Shown here: in pieces, positions 1,787 through 10,017 of the stretch
Numbering within the stretch: the first letter of the stretch is position 1
Layout of the letters: each line of letters begins with the position of its first letter
Source: Calcarisporiella thermophila CBS 279.70
Taxonomy: Eukaryota > Fungi > Calcarisporiellomycota
Assembly: GCF_041956535.1 (NCBI RefSeq)
Contig: NW_027192195.1
Span: 660,150 to 724,149 of the forward strand
Direction of reading: 5' to 3'
DNA: 64,000 nt
Translations under genes and position numbers: made by a program
The notes under the pieces: model-generated
Database searches by the model: none
The model's input: the letters and a program-made list of their open reading frames with translations, nothing else
What the model was told of the DNA's origin: nothing

Positions 1787-1998
1787 ATGTACACGATTTC
1801 CTACGGAAATTCATCATTTGTTTAGAAAAGAGGCAAGCTAAACTTTAATTCGACCGGTACTAAGTTTCTTATATGGGCTATACAGTATCGAGATATAGAA
1901 TTGTAGAATGAATGAACTAATGGTTATCTATTAATTCCTTTATAAGCAACCAAATATCCACAGCATAATAGAAATAATATAATCAGATACATTTTAAT

Positions 1999-3499
1999 GC
2001 TAATTTGATGGTGGTTGCGATGAAGGAGTTAGGAGATTGTGCGACATAGTATTCTATACTGATGCAAATTATGGCAAGCATACAATCGTAGAACTTATAA
2101 AGCTGGCTTCGTAGTAGCACGATAAACGATAAATATAAGCAACAATAACTCTCTGTGATGTTCAAGGACTGTTTGATGTATCACCTAATGTTTACCTAAA
2201 ATAAAAAGTAGATGTTTGAATTCTACTCTTACTATGGCTGACTTACATATTTAATGATATGGTATGGCATCCCGCTGACCACCTATTTCCCTTGATAATA
2301 GCTTTGATTAAGGCTTCACAGATATTTCAAGTCTATAAATGATTAAGACTTTCCATTGGGCGAGTAATTAGTCATTTCCTGCTGTTCGTAGTGGCTCGCT
2401 AAAGAAAGACTCCAGCAATATTCCACAAAAATAAAGTTGCCAGTGGATGAGAACTTTTAATGATCCAATGCATTCTCGTGAAACATATATGGCTACGAGG
2501 CTGGTTTAAAATGCCCTCGAAGATATTGAAAAGACCGATTTGACTATGTAGTTAGATTTTTATGGAATTGTACACGATCCTCTCTTCAGCGAGTCCCTTT
2601 GAACGCCATGAATTCCTTAATCGTTTGTACAATAGCTGTTTCTAATCCCTTTTATGCTTGATAAATATCCCTAAAACCCTTATAAAGAGTTATTGTTGAA
2701 ATATTCACGTGATCTGCTGGACATCATATCACATCGAAAGGTATGAAGTGCAATGATGAGGTTGTCACACAAATATTTCCGCACGAATTACAAACACTTC
2801 AAACAACTTTCCAAAATAATCGTAATTGTCGGGCTTCGCAGAGATTTACTGTATTGTTTTCATCTGTACTCTTACGAAGACAACTCGAATGTGCAGCTTG
2901 ATCATATGCCTGCCATAATATCGTCACTGCAATACAATCTAATAGAGCAGCACAAATATTAATATATGGCATTTTACACCTAATATAATGCCATTCTGAA
3001 AACTAAACATTTAATCACAGTCAGGTAATTCCTGTAGCCTAGACATCAATCTGGATTTCTAACCCAGGCTTGCTGGTGGTGTTATAAAACGTAATTCGAG
3101 TAGTCATACCATGACATCACGACCTTCATTCCACTAGAGTTTCTCCAAAATCATGCCATAGCAGTTTCCAAGCTGGAAGAACTCGAATAAGCGGACCACA
3201 TTTGTCACATCCTTAAGTTGTAGTGCACATAGATTGAATAAATTTCACGGTTAAAGAAGATAGCGTATCTAAGTAGCATAACTACCTGCAACTCTTGGAT
3301 TTCGCTTCCATCGCCAAATTTTACTACCAAAACGTAATCACAATCTCGGCGTCGAAGATGAAATGCACGCGAATGCCCATTCTGATAGTATGAGTGAACG
3401 ATATTTAACGCGTATATGAATATATCAATGGTTAATGTCATAGATATGGATGAAAATGTCTTACGTGTCCTAATAGAGTAATTAACTCATAGCCATACT
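1999..3499 (-). pseudogene. Decayed kinase half of copy A
   Basis: Out-of-frame kinase N-lobe (MLRFAMKYGYE, VLVVKFGDGSEI, VVRLFEFFQLGNCYGMILEKL). GAG>TAG at 3136-3134. Catalytic lobe absent. Terminal SQPPSN* remnant at about 2020-2000 matches the end of copy B. Confidence 0.75.
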
Positions 3500-5361
3500 T
3501 CATAGCGAATCGTAGCATTGTGAAAGCAACAGGCCTTCTTCCCTGCTATCATCGGTACCACCTCTGTCGCGCTCTTTGCCCTTTCTTGAGAGTTTCATGT
3601 ATGGAGTGTATTTTGTCACTGACGGACAAGATTTGAGTCCAGGCTGTGGTCCTGGAAATCGATCTAGGATATGAACTCAAATTAATAATTCTAAATAGAA
3701 AGATGTGTGTGAAAACTTGCCTTTACTTATATGGCCAGGTTGTCTTCGAAGACTTAAGTAATTCAGCATCGCATCTCGGACAGGTCCACGGAGGAAGCTA
3801 CTAATTTTGAGGATGTGTTCAAAGTTGGCAACTAGAACATTGTCGATTGTTAATCGTCCTTTAAGTATTTGCTCTTGAAGACAGAAGTTGAATTTCACAA
3901 TATCGTTGCGGCGTTCGCGGACAGGGTGCATTTCCACGAATTCAAAATACCCATTTGTTGATAGCAGGACTCCATACACTCGGAGTTTCTCAACATGTAT
4001 ATCAGCTATAGGTCGAGCCATTATTTCTAAAGAACGCCGCAGTAGTTGTGCTAGTTTGCGAGTGTCTTTGTGTGCTGACTCCATAGGATCTCTTGGACCC
4101 TCGACCTCAACAATGAATATTGGGATTTTCTCATCGCCATAATCCAAAACACCGCTGCAGAGATCAGCTTTAGGTTTCCAGATCTGGTTGACCTGGATTG
4201 AACATTGCTGTTGAACGAAAATCCGAGCAATTCCTGCCGTGCGTAGTGGTATGCCAAAGAGAGGCTCAAGCACTGTCCCACAAAAATCTAACTCCACGGC
4301 CGATCTAGCGTATCCAATGGCCTCCAGCGCATTGCATACCAGACTTGTAGACAGGTATTTCTCTCGAGGCGGGAACTGAATATCCAACTCTCTCCAGTTG
4401 TCTGCAGTCACTTTGGGCGGTGTGGTGCTGAGGGCTATGTTCTGGGTGGTTTGCGATATCGTCTATAAATCGTATATTTTCAAATTTTAATGTATATCCG
4501 TTCTACACATATGCAACACACTTACCCTAAAAGCTCTTTCGAATACTTTAATCACCTCTTGCCTTTTGTTCTCTGTTATCAGGATAGGAAATACGTAGCG
4601 CCAATCGAGCGAAAGGAGGTCGTGTGGGGTGGGAGCTAAGAGACCCCTCAAATGCTCGGTGAATGAATCGGAAGCTTCACGCAAGGTGTTACTGTCGAGA
4701 GTCTCAGGTGGCCAACGTGAAGCCAAATCATATCGAAATATATGTAGGGCAGCCATGGTAAGGGAGGTATTTAAATATCTACGAATAAAGTTAACCTCAC
4801 ATTAATCTGTTGAATAGTGCAGAGATTTACATGGCTGTGCTTTTAGCATCTTCTCTGCTATCACGCTGCCAAGTTGAATAAATGCAACGAGCGTATGTTT
4901 GCCATATTTTCGCGTCGACAAAACATTCTAGAGAAAGAGGCATAGGTGTATTAATATATGTATGCTTTGATATATATAAAGTAAAACGATATTCCATACT
5001 CGATGTGATATCATCATTTAAACAATACACTTGGTCGAGGTTAGGTGAATCCCAATCAAACACTGGAGTTATAGTCATTGTTGCACACTCTGTGGTCTGA
5101 GTTGATAAGGGAGTTGAAAATGTAATTCGCGGACTTTCTCCCTTAGATTGAGTCTCAAGTGGTATGTGGGGCATTATGGAACTAATTGCAACATTATTCG
5201 ACGTTCTTGTTTTCACTTTTTTCCTCGCTTGCTGAACATCATTCTCTCCTGTTAATAATTATATACAGCTCTTCATTCTAGTTAAACAAACAGATATTTT
5301 TCTCACCCTTTACTTTTTGCTTTTTCGTTAATGCAGTCTGCAATCTGGTCTTCGGAGGCAT
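3500..5361 (-). CDS. Copy A: PD-(D/E)xK restriction-endonuclease-fold protein, nuclease-only derivative of the nuclease-kinase gene
   Basis: ATG 5361 (MPPKTRLQ..). Spliced frame stays open through canonical introns and the nuclease (KADLC...IPIFIVEVEG...HKDTRKL). A 19-nt shortfall versus copy B near 3530 shifts the frame to TGA at 3502-3500. Confidence 0.65.
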
Positions 5362-5738
5362 ACAGACAGCCTTTTAATGTCGAAAATATTAGTCTTTATA
5401 CCAAGAAAATATCTAGTTTTGTGACAGGCATTTCAAATTAATAAACTATCAAAAAGATATGAATTTTATTCCTTAAGGGAACCTTAAACCTCAGGTTAAT
5501 TTGAAAAAGTTTAAAACAATTTTCAATTATTATGATAGATTTAGAGCTCTCAATGCACACGCTTGCCAACAAAAATCGAACATTTATTTTCGCAAAGGAG
5601 CATACTACATTATTATGTTTTGTAGTGAGACTCGTGTGTATCCTAGAAAATATCGAGATATACAGTAATATGGATATAGACAAGTAGGCAAATTGCCACA
5701 ATAGAGTATAAGTACTAAATATCAGAGCGAGTTTATTG

Positions 5739-8702
5739 CTAATTTGATGGTGGTTGTGACTCGGGTGTCGGGATATCGAGCGGTATCTTTTGTTCTAGAT
5801 ACTTCAACACATCTAAGGCAGTAGGACGCTTACTTGGAGAGCTATGGATTAGACGTGGTCCAAGTGGGCCTGCGAAGGTATTGCAAAAATTGGTTACATA
5901 TACCAGTGCATAATAAATGGGTCCCAACTCACCAAGACTTGATAACAAATACATATATTGGAGGGTTCTGCCTGCACTGTAGATGTCCGCTGGATATCCA
6001 TGCGGCTCACCTCGATCGACCTCTGGAGCAATGAACGTGTCAGTACCAGCATTACTGATGGTGGTCGCATCTCCAATTTTCTCGGCTAGGTTAAAATCGA
6101 AGAGAGCCCATCTATCAAACAAGAATGGCACATAATTGTCAGAAGAGAATATCCTTTTAGAGAGGGAGAAAATAACAGCAGTATGCAAGCAATGGTGAAT
6201 AATGTAGAGTGCTTAATGAAGTACCGGTTTCTCATAGGGCTGTATCCAAAATTGTCAGGCTTAATGTCGTGATGGACAATTCCTCTGCTATGGAGAGCAT
6301 GGAGTGCCGAAAACAGATCCTTAACATATCTCTCCTGTTTCGGTAAAATCAAGGTGGAGGTGATAGAAAATCAGCAAATAGCAATGGCACGTGTAGTTGA
6401 AGAAGCGAGTAGTCATACCATGACATTATGATCTTCATTCCGCTCGAGTTTCTCCAAAATCATGCCATAGCAGTTTCCAAGCTGGAAGAACTTGAATAAA
6501 CGGACCACATTTGTCACATCCTTTGGGTGTAGTGCATGCGAGTTAAATAAATTATACGATTAAAGATACCGAATCGAAGTGGCATAGCTACCTGCAACCC
6601 TTGAAGATATTGAATTTCCCTTCCATCGCCAAACTTTACTACCAACACGTAGTCATTATCTCCACGTCGAAGATGGAATGCACGTGAACGACCGTTCTGA
6701 CCATTTAGATGAATCACATTAAATGCGTATATGAATAGGTCAATGGTAAGCGTCATGAGTATAAAAAAATGCCTTACATCTCCTAGTAGAGTAATAAATT
6801 CATAGCCACACTTCATAGCATGACGCAGCATGGAGAAACCAACTTTTTGAATATCACCATGGTATTCTTCCTCTCCGTTATCATCGTTACCCTCTTTGTC
6901 TCTTTTTATGCCCTTTCTTGAGGGTTTCTTTTCTGGAGTGAATTTTGTCGATGATGGGCGAGATTTGAGTCCAGGTTGTGGTCCTGGAAACCGATCTAAA
7001 ATATGAACTCACATTAATAATTCTGGATAGATTTGTGGTGTGAGTGTGAAAACTTGCCCTCACTTATATGGCCAGTCTCTTCTATAAGTTCTAAGTAGCT
7101 TAGCATCGCATCCCGAACAGGTCCACGGAGGAAGCTACTAATTTTAAGGATGAGCTCAAAATTAATACGCTCAACTCTCTCAATTTGTAATCGTCCTTCA
7201 AGTAATTTCTCTTGAAGACAGAAGTTGAATTTCACGATATCGTTGCGGCGTTCACGGACAGGATGCATCTCCACGAATTCAAAGTAGCCATTTGTTGATA
7301 GAAGGACTCCATACACTCGGAGTTTCTCAACATGTATATCAGATATAGTTCGAGCCATTATTTCTAAGGAATGCCGCAGTAGTTGTGCTAGTTTGCGAGT
7401 GTCTTTGTGTGCTGACTGCATTGGATCTCTTGGACCCTCGACCTCAACAATGAATATTGGGATTTTCTCACTGCTACGAACTATGCCACTGCAGAGATCA
7501 GGTTTAGGTGCCCAATTCTGGTTGACCTGGATTGAATATTGCTGTTGAACGAAAATTTCGGCAATCCCTGCCGTGCGTAGTGGCTTGCCAAAGAGAGGCT
7601 CAAGCACTGTCCCACAAAAATCTAACTCCACGGCCGATCTAGCGTCTTCAATGGCCTCCAGCGCATTGCATACCAGACTTGTAGACAGGTATTTCTCTCG
7701 AGGCGGGAACTGAATATCCAACTCTCTCCAGTTGTCTGCAGTCACTTTGGGCGGTGTGGTGCTGAGGGCTATGTTCTGGGTGGTTTGCGATATCGTCTAT
7801 AAATCGCATATTTTCAAATTTTAATGTATATCCGTTCTACACATATGCAACACACTTACCCTAAAAGCTCTTTCGAATACTTTAATCACCTCTTGCCTTT
7901 TGTTCTCTGTTATCAGGATAGGAAATACGTAGCGCCAATCGAGCGAAAGGAGGTCGTGTGGGGTGGGAGCTAAGCGACCCCTCAAATGCTCGGTGAATGA
8001 ATCGGAAGCTTCACGCAAGGTGTTACTTTCGAGAGTCTCAGGTGGCCAACGTGAAGCCAAATCATATCGAAATATATGTAGGGCAGCCATGGTAAGGGAG
8101 GCATTTAAATATCTACGCATATATTTAAGTTAACCTCATATGAATTTGGTGGAGTGCAGGTATTTACTGGACGGTAATTTTATCCTCCTCCGTCTTGTCT
8201 CGCTGCCAGACTAAATAAGCATTACGAGCATATTTTTGCCATAATTTCGCGTCAGCAAAACATTCTATAGAAAGACGAGTATGTGTGGTAATATATGTGC
8301 GCTTTTTGTATCTATTATAAAATGATTTTTCTTACCTGACTTGATCTCATCATCTAAATAATACACCTGATCAAGATTGGGAGAATCCCAGGTAAGTTCA
8401 GGTGATATTTCTTTTGATGAGGACTCTGTGATCTGAGTTGCTAAAGGAGTTGAGAACTTAATTCGCGAACTCCCTCCTTTAGATTGGATCCTTTGTGGTG
8501 TGTGGGGCATTATGGAACTAGTTGCAACAACTTCTGTTTGTGATGACTTTGTTTTCGCTCTTTTCCTTGCTGGCTGATTTTCATCTTTTCCTGTAAATAA
8601 TATATATGCCTTTTCATACTGGTAATAAACAAGCATATATTGTAATTCCTCACCCTCTGCTTTTTTCTCCAAAGCATGTTGTAGTCTTGTTTTCGGAGAC
8701 AT
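5739..8702 (-). CDS. Copy B: intact PD-(D/E)xK nuclease + Ser/Thr protein kinase fusion (Crinkler-type/Spok-like architecture)
   Basis: ATG 8702, basic N-terminus PARKRAK. Nuclease KPDLC...IFIVEVEG. Linker FPGPQPG. Kinase motifs VVK, REI, HHDIKPDN, DFNLA, GT.TFIAPE, DIYSAG, RPTA. Multi-exon with canonical GT-AG introns. Confidence 0.8.
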
Positions 8703-10017
8703 ACTGTCATCCTTTAATATCGAAAATATATTTTTTTGATTTGATAACAAGAGATTCTTTTCGCGTTTCCTGACTGAAGCATATTTATTTTTAATGGGAA
8801 ACTTTCAGATAAAAACAAACGAAAAATTAATAGCCTTTACTATTGATATAATCGGATCGGATCCTCACACTTATTAACATTCATACATTTTTTCAAATAA
8901 CTTTGATTTAGTAGATTTATACTCTTTACAGCATCGGGATATATTAGTCTATGGGATATAAGAATAGACAAAGTGCAAAATTGCCACAGTGTAATAAAAA
9001 CAATATATTCACATTCGTTTCCGACCCGCTAGTTAGGAGATCATGTAGCATTGAATATTATGCGGATACAATATCACGGCAACCATATATCGTAGAAAAT
9101 ACAGAGCTATTAACGTAATAATGCAGGCGGAGAAAAATATACTTTAATTCATTGCGTGAGATTAGAGGGTCTCCACGTCATACCAAATTATATACTGGGC
9201 AGTCAAGGTGAGGAAGGCATACAAATATCTAAGAATACATTATAAAAATGCATCTTCGTTAAGCCAAAGGTAATAATGCAAATTCGTCAATGCTGTTATG
9301 CCTTATAACCTGTTCAGTGGTTTGGCCAATCAGTGACTTTGTTAATTGTCGAACGCGTAGATTAAGGCGATTTTGTTTATAAAAGAGATTATTCTAAGTA
9401 TTTTGCATGCAGGATGACCATTGGCAGAAAAATATGTGATTATAGCAATGCCTTACTTTACACTTTTAAAAGTGCTAGAAAAAGTTGTTGAGATTTGGTT
9501 TCGAAGAGATCGATCTCACTAAAAGTGAATGGGTCTTAATTATTCCGAAAGTTGTTAAATATTCCAGAAAGAGGGCAATAATCGGATAATAGATCTAAAA
9601 AAGCTGGCTATAAAATGAGTAAGAGGTCTGAAAGGACTTGACAACTTGGCTGCAAAACTACTTAAGAGGTGGTCAGACTATGGAGATGTACAGTATGATA
9701 CGAGGCAATAGATAATACAAAAAAGTATATAATATTGAATGAATCCTTTTGCCATTTATTCTCAATATCAAGGCAGAGAGACTTAGAAATGAAAGCTACT
9801 TTTATGTTTCTGTATTCTTAATGAAATACACATATAAACTGAAGATGAACAAAAAATACGATAGAAATATTATACGTATATAAAAGAAAATGCAGGCGAA
9901 AAAAAAAAAACTGAACTTTGCATTCAATGAGCTATGGTATATGACGATAAAAGATAAATAATAATAAAACATGGCGGCAAGCAAATAATAATAATAAGAG
10001 AAAAGAAAATAGGTGGA

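Follow-up and report, generated by a model that had tools for sequence, protein, structure and literature searches.

A tandem gene pair of a kinase family so far known only from Calcarisporiella thermophila: an intact copy beside a probable young pseudogene

The window analysed here, a 64,000-nucleotide stretch of the genome of Calcarisporiella thermophila CBS 279.70 (contig NW_027192195.1), carries a tandem pair of related genes. One of them, copy B, is intact and codes for an orphan central domain followed by a protein kinase, while the kinase-encoding half of the other, copy A, is broken. Copy A is probably a young pseudogene of a birth-and-death family, standing beside the intact B, a reading to which a probability of about 0.6 is assigned. 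The host is an early-diverging fungus of the Calcarisporiellomycota, as the first-pass annotation of the locus had supposed from the DNA letters.

Organisation of the locus

The principal features of the pair, numbered from the first letter of the window, are as follows.

5739..8702, minus strand: copy B, intact, with 11 exons; its translation equals VTP21DRAFT_9372 (745 aa)
3110..5361, minus strand: copy A, homologues of B exons 1-8, frame open for 519 codons
2021..3096, no strand assigned: filler of about 1.08 kb standing in for kinase exons 9-11 of A
1951..2020, minus strand: surviving 3' end of A, with the final 25 nt of coding sequence and the 3' flank
5362..5738, minus strand: spacer of 377 bp from the B stop to the A ATG
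4250..4780, minus strand: A/B conversion tract (B side about 7585-8115), from the alignment and dS

Positions 3097-5389 (A) and 6406-8729 (B) align over 2347 columns with 82.6% identity as a tandem minus-strand pair, the homology reaching only about 28 bp upstream of the ATG. This alignment and the exact gene model of B bear out the description of the locus as twin copies, one intact and one damaged. The legible neighbours code for a subtilase, a BBE oxidase, TCP-1, methionine synthase, a UDPGT, an RRM protein and a Zn-cluster transcription factor. An association with transposons was considered and dismissed, the neighbours being ordinary genes and the filler having no other copy in the genome at the DNA level.

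The gene model of copy B and the protein regions that it encodes are given below.

8702-8654, 8590-8336, 8264-8168, 8112-7860, 7796-7058, 6995-6778, minus strand: B exons 1-6
6696-6592, 6520-6419, 6334-6225, 6111-5933, 5869-5739, minus strand: B exons 7-11
7058..8112, minus strand: orphan central domain (B exons 4-5, aa 135-465), putative PD-(D/E)xK-like fold
5739..6995, minus strand: basic linker and eukaryotic protein kinase (B exons 6-11, kinase aa about 525-745)

Translation of the 11 exons reproduces the public C. thermophila protein VTP21DRAFT_9372 exactly. All ten introns are of the GT-AG type, with the exception of intron 5 (GC-AG). The N-terminus is hydrophilic and basic and includes the NLS-like stretch PARKRAKTK, in agreement with the earlier description, and the proteins may act in the nucleus. 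Neither a signal peptide-like N-terminus nor an LFLAK/HVLVxxP motif was found in the four full-length family proteins searched; the lack of a signal peptide and of an LFLAK header had been noted from the sequence.

The kinase domain

The kinase region of B matches the Pfam protein kinase profile PF00069 with an E-value of 2e-20 and 73.7 bits (gathering cut-off 31.7), and the positions K558, E564, HHD629, N634, DFN650, APE673 and R717 are invariant across the four full-length paralogues. On this profile match the domain is a genuine eukaryotic protein kinase, and with all the catalytic residues kept it looks catalytically competent and complete, as had been ascribed to B. A sequence search with the kinase region recovered three paralogues and, beyond them, only generic kinases at 25-40% identity. 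The HMM of DUF6826 has no match in this genome, a result of little weight as the model was silent in the control genomes too.

The central domain

The central domain probably adopts a restriction endonuclease-like fold of the PD-(D/E)xK type with a D...ExE site, as judged from its conserved residues and the ESM Atlas model. Seven of its residues (E275, D277, D318, E336, E338, H348 and K349) are invariant in the family. In the motif KPDL...IVEVE, D318 is spaced 17 residues from E336-V-E338, with a Glu at the Lys position of (D/E)xK, and H348/K349 sit on the helix that follows. The secondary structure predicted at D318, E336-x-E338 and the next helix fits the beta-beta-alpha-beta portion of a PD-(D/E)xK core. 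In four of six neighbour sets, the proteins structurally nearest to the Atlas model of the domain are of the HSDR_N/PDDEXK type, with TM scores of 0.38-0.47 when normalised by the query and up to 0.75 when normalised by the target. The score of 0.75 was reached over 185 of 201 residues with a bacterial protein that bears the name type I restriction enzyme R N-terminal domain; clusters with PF04313/PF13588 give lower TM scores to the same model. For two paralogues the nearest named feature cluster is PDDEXK_12 (scores 0.79-0.80), which is taken at the level of a lead only.

Searches by sequence and by profile did not tie the domain to a nuclease family. The Pfam, PADLOC, PHROGs and NCBIfam HMM libraries returned nothing consistent for it, and a profile search of the PDB gave no relevant match. 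Run with the central exon on 1.84 billion representative proteins, phmmer returned two C. thermophila proteins and no others, and a profile built from six paralogues found no relatives outside this species. A word-indexed search with aa 100-480 of VTP21DRAFT_9372 returned only the query itself; this is a weak blank, since known paralogues were missed as well. The HMMs of PF25545, PF20516 and PF20713 have no match in the genome and carry little weight, being silent in the control genomes also. Alignment of the family profile with hhalign to an HSDR_N profile of 34 sequences (HsdR of E. coli plus 33 bacterial loci) gave a probability of 1%, a weak negative in view of the small depth of the query profile (Neff 1.8). 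The AlphaFold2 models have a pLDDT of 38 (central exon alone) and 34 (aa 130-470, run on a paralogue alignment of 11 rows) and are too poor to use; a Foldseek comparison of the former with the PDB gave a meaningless TM of about 0.15.

The PD-(D/E)xK nuclease proposed in the first-pass annotation is putative: the invariant D...ExE and the HsdR-N-like neighbours of the Atlas model speak for it, no sequence or profile method matched, and neither the hhalign result nor the AlphaFold2 models confirm the fold. The foremost alternative, which we consider unlikely though deserving of serious attention, is that the domain is not a nuclease and that the family consists of lineage-specific nuclear kinases whose N-terminal domain serves targeting or regulation, A being a dead duplicate and the likeness to Spok and Crinkler proteins superficial. 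Besides the blank searches with the HMM libraries, the PDB, hhalign, PF25545 and PF20516, it draws on the Glu in place of the canonical Lys, on the low overall confidence of the Atlas model (pLDDT 0.55, pTM 0.39) and on the ordinary housekeeping nature of the adjacent genes. It does not readily account for the recurrence of HSDR_N/PDDEXK-type neighbours, the fit of the predicted secondary structure around the acidic residues or the PDDEXK_12 lead, and the loss of the Lys is itself compatible with a nuclease, a D...ExE active site being used by BamHI.

The gene family and the decay of copy A

In this genome the family comprises five intact copies and no fewer than five decayed ones. The intact copies lie on contigs C5 (B), C2, C25, C15 and C8 and share one 11-exon layout, and the decayed ones include A, the relics in its filler, the copies on C23 and C29, and a fragment that lies downstream of the C15 gene at a distance of 2.5 kb. 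Judging from the searches above, the family is so far known only from C. thermophila. The remains of A and its lesions are listed here.

5361-5307, 5248-5000, 4927-4831, 4778-4526, 4462-3721, 3663-3465, 3381-3286, 3211-3110, minus strand: A exons 1-8
between 3532 and 3531, minus strand: 19-nt frameshift deletion in A exon 6, from the alignment to B
3502-3500, minus strand: premature stop in A exon 6, from the 19-nt frameshift, after 519 codons
3136-3134, minus strand: in-frame TAG in A exon 8, CGG in B
2198-2632, plus strand: family fragment in the filler (aa 130-302), with many stops
2377-2439, minus strand: family fragment in the filler (aa 275-295)

Copy A retains the ATG (5361) and, at each junction projected from B through exon 8, both a donor and an acceptor. 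Exons 1-5 carry three indels (+6, -6 and +3), all in frame, and the acidic motif residues of the putative nuclease are untouched. A second deletion, of 9 nt, lies near 3300. Below 3097, A has no homology to B except at 1951-2020, where the final 25 nt of its coding sequence are 96% identical to B and run into the 3' flank. The filler contains scrambled, stop-ridden pieces of the gene's own family on both strands; neither these nor the dispersed family figure in the first-pass annotation. Both the parts of A described earlier as intact (start, splice sites and acidic residues) and the lesions described at about 3530, in the 9-nt deletion, at 3134 and in the lost C-lobe are confirmed by the A/B alignment.

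Comparison of A with B indicates that A was under long-term constraint as an open gene. Under neutrality about 13.5 indel events would be expected in exons 1-5, against the three observed, and the probability of finding no stop is 0.011 on the assumption that half of the observed differences are random. The dN/dS values are 0.31 for the N-terminus, 0.48 for exon 5 and 0.35 for the kinase remnant, the last indicating that the kinase part of A was also constrained until recently. The dS between A and B forms a mosaic (0 in exon 4, 0.055 in exon 8 and 0.5-0.85 elsewhere), which points to repeated gene conversion between the two. The tract that spans exon 4 and intron 4 and enters the first part of exon 5 is about 99% identical, with a dS of 0.

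Two features of A run against its reading as a pseudogene. Its disabling lesions both fall in the kinase part, as would be predicted for a gene reduced to a toxin, a distribution that by chance has p of about 0.09 and is not significant. At the family-invariant sites of the central domain A is no more derived than B, with three derived changes in each.

The history that we propose would begin with one tandem duplication giving rise to A and B, after which A would have been held as an open, constrained gene through most of its existence. A recent rearrangement would then have wrecked its 3' half and inserted scrambled family fragments, and the frameshift and the stop would have come later; it is this order of events that makes a young pseudogene the most likely status of A. 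At best A would now yield a truncated transcript prone to NMD, for with B-like splicing the stop at 3502 precedes the retained introns 6 and 7, and gene conversion with B continues.

The first-pass annotation had regarded A as a maintained toxin that depends on the kinase of B, in a module like the Spok drivers, and its statements on the literature are correct. In Podospora the nuclease domain of Spok kills and the kinase domain gives resistance (PMC6660238), and the truncation Spok3(1-490), devoid of the kinase, is toxic unless wild-type Spok3 gives protection in trans (Vogan et al. 2019, PMC6660238). Transferred to this locus, A would supply the poison alone and be tolerated through the kinase of B in trans, as an addiction or drive pair, and such a pair would fit the tight linkage and continuing conversion of A and B, the confinement of the lesions of A to the kinase half with the 519-codon frame left open, and the HsdR-N-like neighbours of the Atlas model, HsdR being the best match of the Spok nuclease domain as well. 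We nevertheless regard it as improbable. The dN/dS does not separate the two halves of A, the clustering of the lesions is not significant, the filler is family debris and the stop lies ahead of two retained introns. Moreover, decay is not peculiar to A but is seen in several copies, and the copy on C23, which carries stops and frameshifts, lost its 5' end and kept its kinase end, showing that decay is not aimed at the kinases. The family proteins also lack the Spok cysteine cluster, have a kinase of the ePK rather than the ELK-like type and found no Spok-family match by phmmer among the 1.84 billion representative proteins. We know of no sexual cycle described for C. thermophila, and there is thus no evident stage for meiotic drive. 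A still more doubtful variant takes the family as an independently arisen toxin/antidote system of the Spok kind, with an REase-like poison and an ePK antidote, in which A would be a toxin-only allele restrained in trans by B as an addiction module.

Least probable of all is that A gives a truncated, non-toxic protein (N-terminus and central domain) that would act on B and its paralogues, whether as regulator, decoy or dominant-negative partner; the open frame, the retained splice sites and a conversion that keeps the exon 4-5 region near-identical to B, which would preserve a homotypic interaction surface, could be cited for it, but neither dN/dS nor the family-invariant sites reveal A-specific constraint and the arguments for a pseudogene apply equally.

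Significance

Should the central domain prove to be a nuclease, the family would be a sequence-orphan group that follows the nuclease-then-kinase logic of the Crinkler REase-kinase toxins and of Spok, with the kinase presumably controlling the nuclease, and by analogy with these systems it may have a conflict-type role. It would then back nuclease-kinase fusions as a recurrent eukaryotic design, that of a DNA-damaging protein under its own control, and copy A would be a natural truncation for probing protection in trans. To our knowledge, there is almost no functional genetics in the Calcarisporiellomycota. If A is a mere pseudogene, the locus is a clear case of birth and death with gene conversion in a family of fast turnover, and otherwise ordinary.

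Comparison with known systems

The FunK1 kinases (Pkinase_fungal, PF17667) are, like the present family, lineage-expanded in fungi. The catalytic-loop region of the paralogue P0002 scores 28.4 bits against PF17667, just over the cut-off of 24.1, and VTP21DRAFT_9372 falls under it with 16 bits; the family differs in that its match is confined to about 80 of 387 positions of the profile.

Of the structural neighbours of the Atlas model that carry a name, the N-terminal nuclease domain of HsdR (HSDR_N PF04313/HSDR_N_2) is one of the closest, with no profile similarity to the family by hhalign. Unlike HsdR, the present domain is eukaryotic, encoded by an intron-bearing gene and not fused to a helicase.

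Calcarisporiella thermophila is, as far as we know, a free-living thermophilic fungus with no known host. The family proteins lack the signal peptide, the Ubl header and the LFLAK/HVLVxxP motifs of Crinklers, and Pfam finds in them matches of the kinase type only, the Crinkler domain being absent. Crinkler-type proteins with REase and kinase fusions exist, PiCRN8 being an example (Zhang et al. 2016, as reported through PMC5289972). In that account the CR/CRN C-termini have, as probably here, an REase-like domain followed by a eukaryotic-type kinase, and a predicted nuclear action and an expanded, fast-evolving family are common to both. There the nuclease is proposed to act as the toxin, under regulation by the kinase.

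The Spok proteins of Podospora and other Ascomycota show no detected sequence similarity to the family (phmmer with the central exon), and a pattern search of the four full-length family proteins did not find their cluster C-x3-C-x13-C-x5-H-x7-H, which in Spok lies upstream of the kinase. The Spok kinase is ELK-like, whereas the present one is a standard ePK with HxDxKPxN (HxDIKPxN) and APE; Spok has D...ExK against D...ExE here, and its QxxxY was not seen in the family-invariant columns. Spok has a coiled coil at the N-terminus, and the N-terminus of the family is NLS-like and basic as judged from its sequence. The family differs further in its ten introns, its host outside the Dikarya and the lack of a known drive phenotype. 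What the two have in common is a single polypeptide of about 700-750 aa, the order of N-terminal region, PD-(D/E)xK-like domain (putative in the present family), disordered linker and C-terminal kinase, a known or putative nuclease domain nearest to the HsdR type, multiple gene copies, and a truncation that removes the kinase and leaves a potentially toxic N-terminal half.

Organisation of the tandem pair

In the genome assembly (28 Mb, 116 contigs) the window corresponds to G000:C5:660150-724149. Comparison of the window with itself identified two gene copies, A and B, as a tandem direct duplication on the minus strand.

Features of the tandem pair (window positions, minus strand)
8702-5739: copy B, intact gene
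5361-3110: copy A, homologues of exons 1-8
8702-8654, 8590-8336, 8264-8168, 8112-7860, 7796-7058, 6995-6778, 6696-6592, 6520-6419, 6334-6225, 6111-5933, 5869-5739: exons of B, from the mapping of P0001
3097-5389 (A) with 6406-8729 (B): main match, 82.6% identity over 2347 columns
1951-2020 (A) with 5689-5759 (B): second, short match pairing the 3' ends
7057-6996 (B) and 3720-3664 (A): intron 5, GC-AG with donor GCAAGT, conserved between the copies

The public protein of B (P0001, VTP21DRAFT_9372, 745 aa) matches the gene letter for letter, its 11 exons mapping with zero mismatches to the window; intron 5 is the only one of the ten with GC-AG borders, the others being GT-AG. The N-terminal segment, hydrophilic and basic, carries PARKRAKTK, the paralogues start MPPKRA...KQKRGKKP, and a putative nuclear localisation signal can be read here. 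A protein kinase occupies the C-terminal third (PF00069, E=2e-20), and in it K558 (beta3 Lys), E564 (alphaC Glu), HHD629, N634, DFN650, APE673 and R717 are invariant in all four full-length family proteins; the kinase is thus complete, as the first-pass annotation had held. Its guess of an early-diverging fungus was also right, since the species is placed in the phylum Calcarisporiellomycota.

A short conserved minus-strand element (TGTGGCAATTT..CTTGTCTAT-like) follows the stop codon of B (5640-5700) and, in a looser form, that of A (1930-1990), and recurs about 250-290 bp upstream of the B ATG (8950-8990). It may act as a terminator or in regulation, or may mark where a third tandem copy, since lost, had its 3' end.

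Preserved and disrupted features of copy A

The exons of A were obtained by projecting those of B through a global alignment; the joined model served only for frame length and stop position, and searches with window sequence used single exons or P0001 as the query. The ATG at 5361 is kept, as are donor and acceptor at all junctions up to the exon 8 donor, with the uncommon GC donor of intron 5 among them. Length changes in exons 1-5 are all in frame (+6, -6, +3), and all the invariant residues of the central domain are retained (E275, D277, D318, E336, E338, H348 and K349, B numbering). The lesions comprise a frameshift caused by a 19-nt deletion between 3532 and 3531, an in-frame 9-nt deletion near 3300, a TAG at 3136-3134 (CGG in B) and, in the main alignment, the loss of all homology to B below 3097. 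With B-like splicing, 519 codons are open before a stop at 3502-3500. The first-pass description of the locus, with start, splice sites and acidic residues kept and each lesion placed where it is found here, was borne out in every detail. A patch just before the IVEVE strand is strongly divergent (7470-7560 vs 4135-4230; SGIVR-SSEK vs SGVLDYGDEK, plus A314K) and directly follows a near-identical A-B conversion tract.

The 1078 bp between 3097 and 2020 are unique genome-wide at the DNA level. They contain, on the plus strand (2198-2632), a degenerate version of family residues 130-166 and 246-302 interrupted by many stops and, on the minus strand (2377-2439), a piece of family residues 275-295. 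Scrambled debris of the family itself has thus taken the place of exons 9-11 of A. Below this segment A retains the last 25 coding nucleotides and its 3' flank, with 96% identity to B over 1993-2017. On the sequence evidence the replacement is not foreign DNA, and its structure is that of a footprint of messy rearrangement or ectopic repair, not of clean domain loss.

The central domain

By sequence, the central domain (exons 4-5, residues 135-465) is an orphan. A phmmer search with the 243-aa central exon against 1.84 billion representative proteins returned only P0001 and its paralogue P0002, a six-paralogue profile had no match among shorter proteins, and comparisons with Pfam, PADLOC, PHROGs, NCBIfam and PDB gave either nothing or inconsistent matches. 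The DUF7924, PDDEXK_12 and DUF6826 HMMs did not match the genome, a result of little weight since control genomes were equally silent. An HsdR N-terminal profile built from 34 domains of bacterial genomes aligned to the family profile (hhalign) with 1% probability. Two AlphaFold2 models of the domain reached pLDDT 38 and 34, and Foldseek with such a poor model gave a meaningless result.

The positive evidence comes solely from the ESM Atlas model of P0001 (overall pLDDT 0.55), whose structural neighbours were taken over residues ~135-470. They are a cluster of hypothetical Mucoromycota proteins (TM 0.59), an Ascomycota DUF7924 cluster (TM 0.53) and four bacterial/archaeal sets. Two of the four bear the name of type I restriction enzymes or of the N-terminal domains of their R subunits; of the two unnamed clusters, one carries HSDR_N and PDDEXK_3 and the other has no common Pfam family. 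One bacterial/archaeal neighbour aligns over 185 of 201 residues, with a target-normalised TM of 0.75. By language-model features the nearest named cluster is PDDEXK_12 for P0001 and P0002 (scores 0.79-0.80, lead level only). D318 and the invariant E336-x-E338 lie on predicted consecutive strands, followed by a long helix with the invariant H348/K349, a modelled arrangement that fits a PD-(D/E)xK core with Lys replaced by Glu; BamHI likewise has Glu in place of this Lys. A nuclease fold is plausible and rather probable, not established, while the reading that the domain is not a nuclease at all, with which the blank sequence searches would agree, appears unlikely.

Selection on copy A

Nei-Gojobori dN/dS between A and B
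Exons 1-3: dN/dS 0.31, dS 0.85
Exon 4: dN/dS undefined, dS 0, three non-synonymous differences
Exon 5: dN/dS 0.48, dS 0.18
Exons 6-8 (linker and kinase N-lobe remnant): dN/dS 0.35, dS 0.37
Exon 8 alone: dN/dS ~1.2, dS 0.055

The kinase remnant of A is no less constrained (0.35) than the remainder, which argues that A remained complete and under selection during most of the period after duplication and that its lesions are recent. The mosaic dS across exons indicates repeated A-B gene conversion. At sites where three outgroup paralogues agree, derived residues number three in A and three in B for exons 4-5, and five and one, respectively, for exons 6-8, hinting at relaxation in the kinase remnant of A on counts that are far too small.

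Introns outside the conversion tract set the neutral rate (K=0.34, 0.0146 indel events per nt), at which about 13.5 indel events would be expected in exons 1-5 of A under neutrality throughout; three were observed, all in frame. The probability of no stop there is 0.011 if half of the observed substitutions were random and 0.09 if a quarter were. Given this indel deficit and the absence of a stop, the 5' half can have drifted neutrally only if its constraint was lost recently.

Distribution of the family in the genome

Six-frame genome searches with the central exon and the last kinase exon, followed by tblastn on 10-kb loci, identified the following copies.

Family members
Intact, shared 11-exon layout: B (P0001) on contig C5; P0002 (749 aa) on C2; P0003 (750 aa) on C25; P0004 (760 aa) on C15
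Apparently complete: locus L019, G000:C8:1232900-1235700, at the extreme end of C8 (1,236,294 nt); no full-length protein model among the search matches
Decayed: A, the window copy
Decayed, 5'-truncated: L023:4120-5690 (G000:C23), keeping the second half of the central domain and the kinase, with frameshifts and an in-frame stop
Decayed: fragments with a stop on C29
Decayed fragment, residues 99-194: L020:8595-8935 (G000:C15, ~733.1-733.4 kb), same strand, 71-73% identical to P0004, 2.5 kb downstream of the intact C15 gene
Decayed: relics inside the replacement DNA of A

Paralogues are 42-52% identical to B. They sit in AT-rich stretches (33-41% GC vs 47% for the window) among ordinary neighbours (subtilase, BBE oxidase, TCP-1, methionine synthase and others), with no consistent transposon association among the flanking genes. 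The C23 truncation is the mirror image of that of A, and C15 presents another full-copy-plus-fragment arrangement. About 2.6 kb from the C29 relic, an ORF at L024:630-2018 (G000:C29) matches D5_N (primase/helicase N-terminal-like; Pfam, E=3e-7) and is possibly what is left of a virus-like or mobile element. Runs of N adjoin two paralogues, L089:1390-3808 (G000:C25:224789-227207), ~1.4 kb upstream of the intact gene, and L090:7990-8296 (G000:C8).

Interpretation of the locus

We consider A, with a probability of about 0.6, to be a recently formed pseudogene; its family, of putative nuclear REase-like/kinase proteins, would undergo birth-and-death evolution with gene conversion and has so far been found in this species only. 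A would have stayed complete and under selection for most of its history, before kinase exons 9-11 were lost to rearrangement or ectopic repair with family debris.

The first-pass annotation had instead proposed a poison/antidote pair with A as a toxin dependent on the kinase of B, an attractive claim that gained no positive evidence and is very improbable. The confinement of the lesions to the kinase part is suggestive, not significant, given P = 0.09 that both disabling lesions (n=2) fall in the remnant (397 aligned positions vs 923 non-converted upstream), and dN/dS is alike in both halves. Moreover, with B-like splicing the stop lies upstream of the retained introns 6 and 7, which, if the usual NMD rules hold in this fungus, would mark the mRNA for decay; A-B homology ends 28 bp upstream of the A ATG; the upstream spacer is just 377 bp, including the 3' end of B; and other family copies decay differently, the C23 copy having lost its 5' end yet kept the kinase end. 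What stands of that interpretation is the parallel in nuclease-kinase architecture, which is reasonable with one structural lead behind it.

Comparison with Spok and Crinkler proteins

In Spok proteins a coiled coil and an unknown domain are joined to a PD-(D/E)xK domain with HsdR as its top HHpred match, a Cys/His cluster and an ELK-like kinase. Killing is lost with the nuclease mutation K240A; kinase-dead D667A and truncated Spok3(1-490) are toxic, and both are rescued in trans (PMC6660238). [quoted passage not shown]

The B family differs from both in sequence, the phmmer search with the central exon (1.84 billion representative proteins) having matched neither. Unlike Spok, its four full-length proteins have no Cys/His cluster in a pattern search and the kinase is of the ordinary ePK type (PF00069), not ELK-like; unlike Crinklers, they carry no LFLAK/HVLVxxP header, in agreement with the first-pass annotation. 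On these sequence features the family cannot be filed under either. It shares with both the same domain order, and perhaps with Spok the HsdR-like fold, and by analogy may work like these systems.
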